64,000 bases of DNA from Perkinsela sp. CCAP 1560/9 (lineage: Eukaryota; Protista; Euglenozoa: Kinetoplastea), in assembly GCA_965644495.1 (NCBI GenBank), contig CBFFSA010000001.1, positions 372,001 through 436,000 of the forward strand, written 5' to 3'. The position numbers were made by a program, and so were the translations under genes. The notes beneath the pieces were generated by a model that worked only from the letters and a program-made list of their open reading frames with translations, was not told the origin of the DNA and made no database searches. Of the stretch, positions 20,881 to 62,812 are shown in pieces (positions within the stretch are counted from its first letter, which is position 1; each line of letters opens with the position of its first letter).

Positions 20881-21085
20881 GCGGGTTTAAACTCGCCGTC
20901 TGAGCACCATGTGCTTCAAACTTTGAATTCTTGCCCCTCCGCCACCTCCGCCCCTTGCAAGACCTCCGCCCCTTAGCCTGGTGCAAGATGTTTTTGAAAA
21001 GCTTCTGGTGAATATGTTAGTTTTGTGGAGACCGCCAAAGTGTTTTATGGGTAGGAGAAATTTGTGAAGCTTTCAACTGGGACAT

Positions 21086-21680
21086 ATAAAGATACAGTTT
21101 CTGTACCTTGTTGGTACATTTTGCTAGCCCTTCCTTTCTTTTCCCGGAAACGGGCATATTCTTACTTTTAAATGCCCGTTTCCGGCTGACGGTTAGCTGG
21201 AACTGTCCCTCTTTGTCGCGGAAGTAGGGGCGCACTTCGCACTCTTCACCCCTCCCCGGCTCGCTCTCTTCGAGTGAGCTTTCTTCCCTCCCCGGCTCTC
21301 TACTTCTCGTGCTTTCTTCTCCCGGGAGCTATGCGCCATGGTGGCCTCCCTTGAGGACCACTGGGCGTGCTACAGCGGGAGGACACGTTGTATGCGTGTA
21401 TAGGGGATGCGAACTTGCACCCCTCTCTCCCTACATGCTGTAGCGAGTGCGGCGGTAACGGACCTCCCCATGATGCATCTGACAGCATGAACCCACGGCT
21501 TGACCGTGTTGCAGCATGAACCATGGCTATACGTGTTGTAGCATGACCGATGGGCGTCTCGTCTCCTACCTCGCACTCCACTCTCTGTGTGACACCCGTC
21601 GTATGCGGGTCATGCGCCGATGGTATCGGCCGTCACACAGAGAGACGTATCTCTGCGCCACGAGCGTATGATCATGACCA
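21086..21680 (+). mobile_element. SL-headed non-coding retroposon (present only in array unit 1)
   Basis: Starts ATAAAGATACAGTTTCTGTACCTTGTTG (21086-21113), ends TGATCATGACCA; 21088-21679 is absent from units 2 and 3; body homologous to 39052-39510. Confidence 0.7.
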
Positions 21681-38096: not shown

Positions 38097-38137
38097 AGCT
38101 TCTCATACCAACAAGGTACAGAAATTGCATCTTTATC
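38097..38137 (-). ncRNA. Spliced-leader RNA fragment (exon 3' part plus first 12 nt of intron); a retrocopy, not a full gene
   Basis: GATAAAGATGCAATTTCTGTACCTTGTTG|GTATGAGAAGCT matches the kinetoplastid SL consensus ...CAGTTTCTGTAC....TTG|GTATGAGAAGCT. Confidence 0.8.
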
Positions 38138-38570
38138 GTTAAATCTCATAATGGGAACGAATATAGCGACAAAGCTGATGTCTTGGCTCTCTCGGCGTCA
38201 CGAAGACCTTTAAAATCACAAGCGGCAAAGAGGTTGAAGACGATAAAGGCTCCTTCTTCTTCTTCTGACCCCGTATCCTCGCCAGAAGTGACACTCATAT
38301 TGCGCCCAAGAAGGAATGTTGACACTATTTCATCCATACGCAAGAATCCAGCGCAAGAATCAACACCAGCTTGAACCCAGGACCTCGTACACTAAAACAA
38401 CTTCAAAACAATGGGAAAATCTTTTTCTAAAGGAGGTAAACAAGGGGTTCTACGAAACCCTACAGTGCATTGAAGAAGGGCGGCAACGATTTCCAATCGG
38501 GCCAAATGAAACCCACATTTATACAGATGGAGCACGAATCGTTAAAAAGGATGAAACTCACACAGGTTGT
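38138..38570 (+). pseudogene. End of one RNase H domain, linker, and start of a second RNase H domain
   Basis: VKSHNGNEYSDKADVLA then, in a shifted frame, LQCIEEGRQRFPIGPNETHIYTDGA. Confidence 0.7.
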
Positions 38571-45461: not shown

Positions 45462-47060
45462 CACGACTTTAAGGAGGTGCAATTTAGTTCCAATAATTTC
45501 TTTGTATCGCTGCATGATTCAGAATACAGATGAGAACTAACCCGTTTGCTGTCGTGCTCACATCGGTAAGTGCCTTACACAGCAAACGAAAGCTAAGTAC
45601 TGAGGTGTCATAGGGATCGAATGATTAGGATCCATAAAATACAAAGTCTGTTTGTTTTTGAAAAATTTTCTGTAAATTAGCCCCGCGCGGTTAGGAGGAA
45701 GGGTGTATGTTCAGAAGAAAATTGTAAATCCATTAACTGGGAAATTTTCCCAGTGTTGGCTGGTTGGTAAGCCGTGTTGAAGTACTATTCGTCAGCGCAA
45801 CGTGTTGGTAACATCACGTTGGGAGTAGTAGTAGTAGTAATACACAGGGCCATTTGTCTCCGAAGAGATATGGCCCCCTAGTTCCAGCCTAGGTCCGCTG
45901 TGCGGATGCTGATGCTCGAAGCATCTGTACCAACACAGGAGTAATCTCAACCATAGAGGGCACACACCCGACTTATCCTCCTATGAAAGGAAGCCACTAA
46001 TTAACAGCTCCAGGGCAGGAGGGGTTCGCTACCCCCCAGCGTGGATTAACAAGTTAATCCACTACTCTGCCTTAATTTGTTGCGTGGAAACTACCCTAGT
46101 TTCTTGACGTCTTGTTGTGCTGACACCGGGTAGCTCCACAACATGGGAGATAGGGGCGCCGAAGGGCGGCGAAAAGAGGCGCGGTGGAGATCGAAAGGGC
46201 GGGGGAGAGTGCAGCGGCGGGAGAGCGCGGCGGGGAGCGCGACGGAGAGAGTGGCGGTGAGAGAAGTCGGCGAAGGGGGCGGCGAAGGGGCGACGAGGGG
46301 GGCGGCGAAGGGCGGAGAAGGGGGCGGAGAAGGGGACGGAGAAGGGGGGGCGAAGAGGGCGAAGGGGGCGGTGAAGGGGCGGCGAAAAGGGCGGCGAAGG
46401 GGGATGAAAGGGGCGGCGAAGCAGGGGGTGAAGGGGGGGCAGGAGCACAGGAGGGGGGCCAGGAGGGCGGCGCTGGTGGTGGGTAAGCGGGGCGGCGAAG
46501 GACGCGCAGGAGGGGGGGGCAGGAGGGCGGCGCTGGTGGTGAGCGGGGCGGCGAAGGACGCGCAGAGCAGTGGGCGGGGAGGGCGGGGGGCGAAAGGGGG
46601 GGGCGACGAAGTCAGCGCAGGAGGGGGGAAAAGAGGCAGCGAAGAAGGGGGCGCAGGGTAAAATGGTGTTGTGTAAATTTTCAACAAGGTAATTTTTCAA
46701 TATTGATCCGATTCGCTCCCATCGGGTCAATTGGGCATCCCTTCATCATGGGGTATTTTATCTCGCCGAACCAAGTTTTTCTCAAAAAACTTGCGTAAGT
46801 GCCCGATCGCTTGTAAACCGGGGGACGGAATAATATTAAGTTGTTGAAACTTAATAATAACTTGACAACTTAATAATAACCTGTCAAACCTAATAATAAC
46901 CTGTCAACGTTGTGAAACTTAATATTAACTTGTCGGCGGGTTATTATTAAGTTTGTAATAAAATTAACAAATTGTTTTTTTATGTATGCAATCTTTAACA
47001 ATATTTTTTTTATCTGAATCTTTACCCGACTTCATAAACTTCATAAATCTTTCTTTACCT

Positions 47061-49327
47061 TTATTCGGTGGAGCGTCGTGGGTTACACCATTTATCGAGC
47101 CGTCCTTGGAATGATTTTCGTGCCTGGACGCTTTTCCCACGCTTAAAGGCATCTTCGATTCTCTTAGCTTCGTCTCTCTCATCGTCATCGCTTGGTGGAA
47201 CAAAGACATATCCTTCTAAACAATTCACATGCGACCACGATGCATCACAAGGGTCGATATACCCCAAGCTTTTGAATTGTTGAACAACGTTCATAGAAGA
47301 GGAAAGGGTCCCTGATTCATCAAGAGAGTCGTTGTCGAGGTTTATAACTTGTTCGTGCGCTCGGGCAACGGCATTATGCATCCATTGTCTTTTTTGGCGG
47401 GCGGTCCGACGGATATGTTGTTCTCTGTGCCAAATGTTTACTTGCTCGCGTTTGTACGAAGAAGCATAAAATACATCAATCCATTGGATCCAGGATGTTG
47501 TTGCAGGGGGTAATATGGCACAATAGCAGTTAGCCACAGTGGCAAACGCATCGAGAACGTCACTTGTTATGTGAGATCGGCAGGAGTCTAGATAAACTAA
47601 AGTGTGGCCTGCGTCATTTATATCCAGTTCACGTTTGAGAAAGGGAATAAAGTCTTGGAGAAAAAAATCTTTGTTCACGACACCTTTCGGAGTAAAAGCT
47701 CGAGCCGTCCTTGCATCAAATATCTCGTGACTAGATCCTTTTCCAGCTCCTTTCCACACGATAAAAGGTTTTAGAAAGAAATGACTCGTTGGACTTCCAT
47801 TTTTGTCCAGTTTCACGCCAGCACCGCAGATAAGCGTTGCGCATCGCTTCATATCATTCGGATTGCAACGCCCTCGTACATCTTCTTCTCCTCGCTGTGC
47901 AATTGTTTTTAAAGATTTCATGGACCCGCGAAATGATATGGGAATTTCATCAAAGTTCAGAACGGAACGAAACTTTTTTGTTTTAAGACAGCGATAGGCA
48001 AACGTATGAAAGGAATGAATTCTTTTCTTTATCTCTTCACTTGATAGCTGAGTTGATCTCTTTACTAATCTTATAGACCATTTGTAAGAGTGGAGGAATC
48101 TCCCTATCCTACGTTCGCTTACTCTTGTAATCCCCCGTGCTTTGTTCCGCTCTGGTGATTTGCGGTTTTCCTTTTTCAGCATGCGAAATGCCTCTTGGCG
48201 CACCATCTCGGTTGTTATCAAAGCATCGTTCTCTCGAGCTCCAAGAATAAAATAATGCAATTGTTGTTTTAACCATTTCAGTTTATGCCCCTTTACATGC
48301 CTTTTACGCTTTTGACTATGCCTAGGAATATTAGAGTATGCCATAACTTGCTTTTTGTTAAAAATGTGGACACGTTTCTTAGGGAATCGCTTGTCGATCC
48401 AAGAGTTTAACTTGCGGAGTGGTCCATAAGCATCTCGATCTTGTTGCGACCAGGAAATCCACTTCTCATATATTACACGCTTTTGTCTAGCCGTCCAAAT
48501 CATCCAAATCCAAATCATTCCGGATTGCTCCGGATGGTCACTGGCAAGCCAGACCCTTCACAGACAGATTTGGAAGTTCCGAGGCCGACGTTCTCTACCA
48601 GTTTCCGCTTGTCCAAGGCGGCACCAACGTGCTGTTGCCAACACGCTGCGTCGACGAATTGTACGTCAACACGGCTTACCCAAGAGTTTTAAGCCGGGTA
48701 AGGGAGCTGGTTCCCTGAGGGGAGGGTCCGGGACGGTCCTCCGAGTACTGGGCCTAGTCGGTTCTCAGCCCAGCCTCTTAGAGTGAGGCCGCCAGGAATA
48801 TTGCGATGAGCGGGTTTGAACTCGCCGTCTGAGCACCATGTGCTTCAAACTTTGAGTTCTTGCCACTCCGCCACCTCATATATTACACGCTTTTGTCTAG
48901 CCGTGGATTCCACTCGACCGCGCACACCCTGGTCTATATGACGCCCCGTATATACTACGGAATGTTGTTTTTTGCGCTCGTTCTTGTCTTTCCCTCCAAC
49001 AGTCAGCTCCGCTCCGTTATCTTCATCATCCGAAGTTGAATTACTCTTAATTTTACTTTCGCTCGCACTTTCAACATTATATCCTATTTCTTCTTCGCTT
49101 GAATTCACACTTTCACATTCGCTTTCACTTTCGCTCTCGCTAGCACTTTCACTTTCTCCATCGCTTCCGCTACCAATTAAGTCCGACGAGTCATCAAGCA
49201 TTTCTACCCCTTCATCATCCTCAAGGGACATAATCTCATCGTTTTCCTGAACGTAGGTTGGGTCACACTCTGCCTGAGCCAATCTATGAAGGGTCAAACT
49301 TTCGGCGAAAAAATCTCCTTCTCCCAT
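47061..49327 (-). pseudogene. DDE_1-type transposase interrupted only by a SINE-A; about 618 aa when reconstructed
   Basis: Motifs LNFDE, YLDSCRSH, IQWID; peptide TARQKRVIYE duplicated on both sides of the SINE. Confidence 0.9.
48495..48877 (-). mobile_element. SINE-A, full length, with a 30-bp TSD
   Basis: CTCATATATTACACGCTTTTGTCTAGCCGT at 48465-48494 and 48875-48904 (CTC overlaps the SINE 5' end); A/B boxes; GATTTG tail. Confidence 0.93.
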
Positions 49328-50203
49328 CGAAAAACACAAACTTAATAATAACTTGACAACTTAATAATAACTTGTCCAGCTTAATAATAACCTGTCTAGC
49401 TTAATAATAACTTGTCTAACTTAATAATAAACCGCAACTTAATAATAAACCGCATCTTAATATTATTCCGTCCCCCGGTTTAGTATTTGTCACCGTAAAA
49501 AGTTTATGTCCTTTCCCCAAAACAGTGGCCCCCGTCGCAGAAAACCCGATACATTTGCTTATGTGAAAAGTAATTTTTTCAACAAGGTACAGACACACCA
49601 ACATCACGTTGGTGCCGCCTTGGAAAAGCGGAAACTGATAGACGATGTCGGCCTCGGAATTTCAAAATCTGTCTGTGAAGGGTCTGGCTTGCCAGTGACC
49701 GTCCGGAGCAATCTGGAATGATTTGGATTTTGGTGGCCAGCCGTCCCCCCCAACACACTTGACCCCCCCCCTCCCCCCCCCCATCAGCACACCTAGGACC
49801 TCTAGAATGTGTTTGTCTAGTCTGTTTGTTCGAGCTTTCCTCGTTTCATGCGACTCGGGTCGCGCTGGGATTCATGAAAACAGCACATTTTGATCGTCCG
49901 GATACGTCCCGCATAATACTTGGACCATGCGGAGTACAAGAAGGTTCCTTCAGCAGCCCGTGATTAGGAAGCAACACTTCTACAGCCCTTGATCGGAAAA
50001 TAAGTACACAATCCTGAGGATGTTGAAGACATGGGTAAAGTGAAGGAGAATTCGCCTTTTCCGAAATATAATTAGATTTTCCGAAACACTGTTTCAAAAA
50101 GATACAAAAAAAGACGTAGTGGAAAGTAGTGTCTTTACCGATTTACAAAGAATGCCAGATATTTCCCAGCCGTTTTGGGTGCTTTACAGTAGGCTTGTGA
50201 CGG

Positions 50204-61855: not shown

Positions 61856-62812
61856 CTCCCCCCTACACAAGTAATTATAAGTATAAATTATAATTTTTTT
61901 GAATTTATATTTATAATTATAATCACTTATGGATGTGAATCTAGTGAACCTGGAGAGGGGTAGAAATTGGAATTTCATGTGATGTGATGGTATACATGTA
62001 TGGTCATGGTCAGCCGCCCATTTGGCCTCGAAAGGCTGTGGGCCCTCAACCATCCAGATGAGGTGGCTGACAGCTCAGGTATATTCCGAGCCGTCACCGC
62101 TCCTTTCGGAGCAGTTTGCATAGCCAATCGCAGATCGCCGCGATTGACCTTCATTCAGGATGGGAGCAAGAGACGCAGTTTCTTGACGTCTTGTGCTGAC
62201 GCCGGGTAGCTCCATACTCGGAAAATGCGGTGGGGAGAGCTACGGGTGGCGCGTCGGGTGGCGAGGCGGAAGCGCGGCGGGTGGGGCGGGGGGAGCGCAG
62301 TGGTGAGCGTGGCGGGGAGAGCGGCGGGTCGCGCGGTGGCAAGCGTGGCGGGGAGCGTGGCTGGGAGAAGGGGCACATGGGGGGTGTCAACAAGGTACAG
62401 AATAAAATACCAGCCAACAGGGTGATGGTATATACAGTGTATAGCACTAAAATTGTTACGCTAAATATTTCACTCATTTCGAATATGGAGTGAAACCAGA
62501 GAACCTTTTTCTCAACCCACCTTTTTGATGGTCTACCGCCAACCGAGATAAGTCGGCTATTGAAGAAGACCCGCTTGATGACCTTTTTCGAGATATCTTT
62601 GAGAAGGATTAAGTGAAGTAGTGACAGGACACTAAAAATAAATAGAAATGACAAAAAAGAGAAAATAAAAAAAAACGCGACAAAAAAAAATATCGATCGA
62701 ATCGATCGAAGTTGTATTTATAATTACTTATGAAAGGCATAGGAATTATAAGTCACAAGGGAGTAAAAGTGCTAGTTCAAGGTGTATTTATAATTACTTA
62801 TGGAGGGGGGAG
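61856..62812. mobile_element. Stowaway/mariner-like MITE hosting an SL-headed retroposon
   Basis: TA-CTCCCCCCT..AAGTAATTATAA / TTATAATTACTTA..AGGGGGGAG-TA. Confidence 0.7.
62000..62402 (-). mobile_element. SL-headed non-coding retroposon related to 45823-49599
   Basis: Starts TTCTGTACCTTGTTG; C-rich body; shared box GGAGCTACCCGG.GTCAGCACAAGACGTCAAGAAACT; TTCG hairpin; (TGACCA)2 end. Confidence 0.72.

Follow-up and report, generated by a model that had tools for sequence, protein, structure and literature searches.

In the 64,000-nt stretch of the Perkinsela sp. CCAP 1560/9 genome analysed here (the window; contig CBFFSA010000001.1 of assembly GCA_965644495.1, forward-strand positions 372,001 to 436,000), positions 45810 to 49612 hold a non-coding retroposon whose 5′ end carries two relics of the organism's own spliced leader (SL), separated by 221 nt. 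The element is, as a first-pass annotation of the window had held, an intron-less retrocopy of an SL-bearing RNA; a 3′ hairpin module common to copies of a long interspersed nuclear element (LINE) links it to such an element. Most likely, this lineage has twice passed through trans-spliced RNA and back into DNA, and it gained foreign sequence in doing so. The full reading, which we regard as probable, is that of a non-autonomous retroposon mobilized by a LINE, whose template was an SL-capped read-through transcript and which passed through at least two rounds with capture of flanking DNA. Three mobile elements are nested in the interval, a DNA transposon lying in the retroposon and an abundant short repeat in the transposon; length and layout of the retroposon were computed after removal of the nested transposon (46816-49480). 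The features, in window coordinates, are as follows.

49600-49612, no strand: target-site duplication beside the 5′ end, identical to 45810-45822, single in the empty site
49594-49599, minus strand: six extra nt at the 5′ junction, three of which could lengthen the relic to 17 nt with one mismatch
49580-49593, minus strand: younger of the two SL relics, at the outer position, comprising the 3′-terminal 14 nt of the exon and no intron, equal to the exon end of the SL RNA gene
49483-49579, minus strand: 5′ part of the spacer, 97 nt, matching only itself and unique in the genome
46816-49480, minus strand: DNA transposon with terminal inverted repeats (25-bp perfect inverted ends, TA on both sides), a later insertion outside the retroposon proper
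46692-46815, minus strand: 3′ part of the spacer, 124 nt, matching only itself and unique in the genome
46682-46691, minus strand: inner, older SL relic of 10 nt, an exact match at the canonical 5′ edge of the family
46148-46658, minus strand: C-rich tract of degenerate short repeats, 57% C and 79% pyrimidine, differing in length among copies
46083-46140, minus strand: conserved box with a three-helix RNA structure, 21 genomic copies versus 0 in the control, covariation in 6 of 18 pairs
45845-45974, minus strand: 3′ module common to a LINE 3′ untranslated region (UTR), 81% identity over 131 nt to loci L035/L045
45847-45876, minus strand: 3′ stem-loop with TTCG loop, presumed recognition hairpin of a reverse transcriptase (RT), kept in 10 copies, compensatory changes in 2 of 14 pairs
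45825-45839, minus strand: (TAC)5 microsatellite tail; relatives have other simple repeats after the same hairpin
45810-45822, no strand: target-site duplication beside the 3′ tail, identical 13-mer at 49600-49612, single in the empty site
61998-62412, minus strand: shorter family member (L060), in which 12 nt of spacer separate a 15-nt relic from a degenerate outer one and the tail is (GACCAT)n

On the minus strand, the outermost element extends from 49599 to 45823; without the transposon it measures 1,110 nt, and none of its open reading frames (ORFs) belongs to a known family. It is bracketed by the target-site duplication (TSD) AACATCACGTTGG, whose two copies agree at 13 of 13 positions. 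The joined flanks, with a single 13-mer retained, align to a paralogous copy of the host repeat (the reverse complement of 48495-48874), in which the 13-mer is present once, so that this copy represents an uninterrupted empty site. Because the alignment of the flanks to the empty site is free of gaps, the insertion boundaries are exact. The insert is one single-unit insertion, and its target was another copy of the short repeat seen at 48495-48874. The perfect duplication, the length and the collinear empty site uphold the earlier description of a 13-bp TSD around a non-coding insert of ~1.1 kb.

Read from 5′ to 3′, the element consists of the six extra nt, the outer relic TCTGTACCTTGTTG, the 221-nt spacer, the inner relic TACCTTGTTG, ~30 nt of leader-proximal sequence, the C-rich tract of ~510 nt, the 58-nt box and two further 3′ modules, and it closes with the TTCG hairpin and (TAC)5. 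This is the order given by the first-pass annotation: the six extra nt and the last 14 nt of the SL exon stand exactly at the 5′ end without an intron, the second remnant placed ~220 nt inward is the exact 10-nt relic behind the spacer, and the C-rich tract, the box (58 nt long), the hairpin and the tail were each located. What follows the outer relic is AAAAAATTAC instead of GTATGAG, that is, the intron is absent; the exon end itself was defined from the SL RNA genes. The SL exon end joined to GTATGAGAAGC, with which the introns of kinetoplastid SL RNA genes typically begin, occurs at 8 genomic sites, two of which lie in a 297-bp tandem beside a 5S rRNA gene. The SL exon is ~38 nt long, and 55 papers print its CAGTTTCTGTAC core for the leaders of trypanosomatids; the exact string of this leader is absent from the indexed literature, and a search with Rfam left the SL RNA gene itself unmatched, the sole scoring match being the neighbouring 5S gene. 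The leader in the element is the organism's own SL: the exon of the SL RNA gene ends as the relic does, which disposes of the objection that the leader of this organism might end otherwise.

Relics of this kind are abundant in the 21-Mb assembly. We counted intron-less copies of TACCTTGTTG, defined as this string followed by a base other than G, and found 693, versus 37 in the control, for which the sequence was reversed. By arithmetic from this census, the chance that the 10-mer falls on the correct strand and no more than 50 nt from the C-rich edge is ~4e-5. The 14-mer followed by GT has 369 matches, mostly not SL genes; those sampled belong to a retroelement family whose body begins GTAC and which is headed by relics of differing length. 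In 7 of 7 elements examined, the 5′ end defined by a TSD adjoins the outermost relic (the element here, L066 with an 11-bp TSD, the window relative L060, L067, L079 and two neighbours in L062, one of which is a 5′-truncated LINE fragment with two relics). The predicted association of SL remnants with TSD-defined 5′ ends was thus found in all seven.

Further relics were observed in other contexts. At 38098-38140 on the minus strand, an SL exon is followed by a true intron start, which a repeat cuts off after ~12 intron bases; this copy at ~38.1 kb is either a broken SL RNA gene or a retrocopy. At 21070-21113 on the plus strand, a 28-nt leader relic heads a member of a large family with the body start GTACATTTTGC, and at ~1577-1613 of L071 (oriented) a relic of nearly full length (~38 nt, two differences) stands at the head of another element, which has inserted into a family copy. 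In the abundant GTAC family, the relics end 8-12 nt short of the 5′ end of the leader, a shortfall that might reflect a modified cap region blocking the RT.

The box has 21 genomic copies including two duplicate pairs, hence 19 independent ones. A search of the genome for SL remnants upstream of the box, as the first-pass annotation had suggested, shows that in 11 of these 19 a relic borders the C-rich tract on its 5′ side; 9 of the 11, the element here included, carry at least two relics, and family relatives have up to five. The window relative, which had been described at ~62000-62402 with the SL directly before the C-rich tract, indeed has its 15-nt relic there; a second, degenerate relic lies 12 nt further upstream, and the copy has its own TSD. 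L060 and its sister copy L067, to which it was aligned, have the same inner relic and the same 12-nt spacer, their outer relics are truncated independently, their target sites differ, and each has its own TSD adjoining the outer relic. The shared inner head and the separate outer truncations indicate that composite heads are inherited and re-capped. The master copy of this pair was not found in the genome. The 3′ tails vary from copy to copy (TAC, ATCC, AAAAC, AACC and others), and the conserved start of the C-rich tract is preceded by differing short leaders in different subfamilies. Unique leaders joined to the tract measure ~45 nt in L071, where the tract is clearly truncated, and ~57 nt in L020. 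Subfamily-specific and unique short leaders of this kind fit smaller captures after 5′ truncation.

Stacking of relics recurs throughout the genome. We defined a stacked pair as two relics spaced by at most 30 nt and sorted the classes that restart at an AG by eye among the listed pairs. There are 91 stacked pairs with spacers of 0-30 nt, versus 0 in the control. The last 25 nt of the leader contain only two AGs, those in CAG and AAAG; nine pairs restart at TTTCTG, directly after the SL-internal CAG, and two restart at ATACAG, directly after AAAG. In these 11 pairs the restart right after an SL-internal AG implies that a new leader was spliced onto a DNA-encoded old leader. A further 33 pairs have zero spacer, a 10-nt inner relic and no AG before the junction. 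At their junction stands a perfect repeat with a 10-nt period and TG at its bounds, and in one copy a unit is repeated together with its mutation; our guess, judged from the repeat pattern, is that these pairs may have arisen by slippage, which would fit them better than a new round. Stacks with the 10-nt period reach up to five units, some with the same mutation (for example, L062 (oriented) 1138-1185).

The link to a LINE lies in the 3′ end. The 3′ module follows an RT ORF in L035/L045 and in L046, and in L035/L045 it begins 55 nt after the ORF of the RT C-terminus. The hairpin is conserved in copies that include one LINE 3′ UTR, and the compensatory pairs support the structure by covariation. 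The SL-headed LINE fragment in L062 has two box-like modules in its 3′ UTR. The nearest protein relative of the partner fragment, at 43% identity, has a similar module after an RVT_1 ORF, and the RT of a longer relative is, among solved structures, closest to L1 ORF2p. As a candidate partner we rejected a 5-kb tandem array at C1:2.477-2.493 Mb, which carries the 3′ module but whose ORFs belong to no Pfam family. The array (G000:C1:2477257-2492768; L013-L016, L043) comprises four 5,093-bp tandem units with ORFs of 484 and 514 aa, and each unit contains a 5′-truncated copy of the last 234 nt of the element (96% identity) with an (AAAAC)n tail.

The element has no convincing A or B boxes and contains nine runs of at least four T, and neither Rfam nor ARAGORN detected a tRNA, 7SL or 5S head in it, which agrees with the initial remark that A and B boxes are not evident. 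In the window, the ORFs of the plus strand extend to ~10.9 kb and those of the minus strand start at ~53.9 kb, with repeat-rich DNA between them. Both the element and the window relative are in the sense orientation and are located inside the minus-strand gene cluster (53.9-64 kb) or downstream of it, an arrangement that would be compatible with read-through transcription. The interval 11000-53800, ~40 kb between the converging gene clusters, has almost no long ORFs and is packed with copies of retroelements and transposons. The C-rich tract was also considered as a pyrimidine tract feeding an AG at the start of the box and was discarded, no leader-to-box junction being present in the genome.

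We infer three parts of the full reading: read-through by RNA polymerase II (Pol II), the origin of the spacer in a flank and the identity of the LINE that supplies the enzyme. In the proposed cycle, the RT of a LINE would recognize the 3′ hairpin and microsatellite tail of the retroposon. The template, not made from an internal promoter, would be part of a Pol II read-through transcript to which the SL is added by trans-splicing, and the DNA copy would therefore begin with the 3′ part of the SL exon. In a first round, an earlier copy would have retained 10 nt of the leader, too short to include either SL AG; since the inner relic lacks an AG, the acceptor for another round would have had to lie upstream, which fits the idea of the first-pass annotation. 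In the second round, an AG in the flanking DNA, 221 nt upstream, would have accepted the leader, and the composite of new leader, 221 nt, old relic and body would have been reverse-transcribed and inserted whole with the 13-bp target duplication. Trans-splicing would in effect bring about a 5′ transduction. The spacer later received the DNA transposon, possibly pogo-like, and the transposon the abundant short repeat. A more general proposal, to which we give slightly less than even weight, is that trans-splicing is the step that forms the 5′ end in a promoterless cycle, in which sense copies within polycistrons, even 5′-truncated copies of LINEs and short interspersed nuclear elements (SINEs), can be re-capped at an AG of the relic or of the flank.

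The 221-nt spacer has an ordinary composition, no sizeable ORF and neither a 3′ tail nor a hairpin of its own. Several results weigh against the reading of a LINE-mobilized retroposon with flank capture. Searches with both halves of the spacer and a sensitive local BLAST returned only self matches, with no second copy in the 21-Mb assembly or in 351 kb of family loci (those with L numbers); because the spacer is unique in the assembly, no parent locus or acceptor AG can be shown. The unique leaders of L071 and L020 are equally untraced in the genome. No active partner LINE was identified, and the closest intact LINE relatives have only ~40% protein identity to the partner fragment. Five sequencing runs were examined as contigs, four apparently DNA (kind not on record) and one a small, possible RNA run; the latter contributes a single contig, which lies on the nested transposon and not on the retroposon. 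Finally, spacers of 31-60 nt between relics do not occur, and those of 61-300 nt are few (15 pairs versus 2 in the control), one being the SL gene array and most of the remainder looking like neighbouring elements, as inspected for L071 only. Long spacers being rare, capture of a long flank is the exception and not the rule. The first-pass annotation had every new copy depend on a flanking AG and capture host DNA, one scar per round. Of this, the recurrence of stacked relics stands; the general rule does not, since most spacers measure 0-30 nt, the 11 AG-restart pairs were re-spliced inside the relic and 33 pairs have the 10-nt period.

The alternative that survives best, which we nevertheless think unlikely, is a chimera made in one round: the RT would have halted 10 nt into the leader and switched to an unrelated SL-capped mRNA, 221 nt from its 5′ end, to end on the leader of that mRNA, so that a single insertion would join the two RNAs. 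L1-type LINE enzymes make chimeric retrocopies by template switching, and the related RT is closest to the L1 type; a single target duplication around both relics fits such an event, and the extra nucleotides at 5′ junctions show that 5′ ends are joined untidily. The gene of the donor mRNA would be expected in the genome, yet the 221 nt are unique and lack a sizeable ORF. True re-splicing of relics and inherited composite heads, moreover, are seen elsewhere in the genome, which implies that multi-round cycles occur. We consider it improbable that the parent was already composite, the 221 nt being a piece of an older SL-headed retro-fragment upstream that was re-spliced at or near its relic. 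Head-to-tail pile-ups of SL-headed elements are common and re-splicing at relic AGs is documented in this genome, but neither the assembly nor the family loci contain another repeat or gene to which the 221 nt can be matched, and the 221 nt have neither tail nor hairpin. Two independent adjacent insertions, or a chance origin of the inner 10-mer, are very improbable: 10 nt is short and neighbouring SL-headed elements do exist, but a single perfect duplication encloses the entire unit, its flanks are collinear with the empty site, neither a tail nor a duplication lies between the parts, relatives have their relics at the same position, and the expectation is the ~4e-5 given above. Derivation of the leader piece from an insertion into an SL RNA gene, as for SLACS, CZAR and CRE, which are flanked by SL exon fragments, deserves almost no weight. 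The alignment of the flanks refutes it, since they belong to a dispersed repeat and are not the halves of an SL gene, and the relic lies inside the target duplication, is the 3′ end of the exon and has no intron after it.

With the reading of an SL-capped, LINE-mobilized retroposon retained, one of the closest parallels is found in the DinoSL relict retrogenes of dinoflagellates, reportedly described by Slamovits and Keeling in 2008. In these, DNA-encoded leader remnants mark copies of trans-spliced RNA, and remnants in series are read as repeated rounds (PMC6050394; PMC5585692). The likeness extends to a 5′ end that copies the 3′ part of the host's SL exon and leaves out the intron, the hallmarks of retroposition, multiple relics and re-splicing at a relic AG. 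The tagged units here, in contrast, are SINE-like and LINE mobile elements and not protein-coding genes, the host has an SL of kinetoplastid type, and in the element described here 221 nt separate the tags, which abut directly in DinoSL retrogenes. Leader relics were found in the literature only for dinoflagellates and perkinsids.

As in LINE/SINE pairs of the stringent type (CR1/L2/UnaL2-like), a hairpin of a LINE 3′ UTR recurs in a non-coding element with variable simple-repeat tails and TSDs of 10-15 bp; unlike typical SINEs, the elements have no tRNA, 7SL or 5S Pol III head with an internal promoter, and their 5′ end would be set by trans-splicing. L1 elements can likewise acquire extra 5′ sequence, through an upstream promoter (5′ transduction) or template switching (chimeric retrocopies), so that the new insertion brings an upstream flank or a second RNA along at its 5′ end; the cause proposed here is a different one, namely that trans-splicing uses an acceptor lying upstream. 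The Pr77-bearing retroposons of trypanosomatids (L1Tc/NARTc, ingi/RIME, SIDER) are likewise LINEs of kinetoplastids accompanied by short derivatives that are non-autonomous; they have an internal promoter and unspliced transcripts (PMC1874656, PMC8190864). Unlike these, the elements here carry the spliced leader itself. The Pr77 type is marked by the Pr77 hallmark, with an HDV-like ribozyme, at the 5′ end and by a poly(A) tail; compared by ribozyme family and tail, the element matches no Rfam ribozyme family and its tail is (TAC)n.

The presence of leader relics on LINE and SINE-like elements of a kinetoplastid-type genome suggests that these elements rely on polycistronic transcription and trans-splicing by the host instead of a promoter of their own, the Pr77-bearing trypanosome retroposons representing the opposite strategy. 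If the general proposal of a promoterless cycle is true, copies that would otherwise be 'dead on arrival' stay heritable and host sequence can travel with them, as the 221 nt would here, which would give organisms with an SL a path of their own to 5′ transduction and exon shuffling. Leader relics form a built-in record of copying frequency and source RNA that has so far been exploited only for dinoflagellate genes; rounds of retroposition, rescue of truncated copies and capture of flanking DNA can be counted directly from sequence.

The transposon at 46816-49480 contains arrays of an ~18-nt subterminal motif and a split ORF of 485 aa and 164 aa. Its ORFs have no match in Pfam or the PDB; the 485-aa ORF resembles DDE_1/pogo transposases by protein-atlas features alone, with a very high score, and we treat this as a lead only. 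The short repeat inside the transposon (48495-48874) has an unusually long, perfect 30-bp target duplication. A tRNA-derived origin of this repeat was unsupported by ARAGORN and Rfam, and we call it a SINE-like repeat only. The same very abundant family is also present at 49613-49740 and 45745-45822, and contig depth over the repeat is ~100-400x that of neighbouring sequence in two DNA runs.

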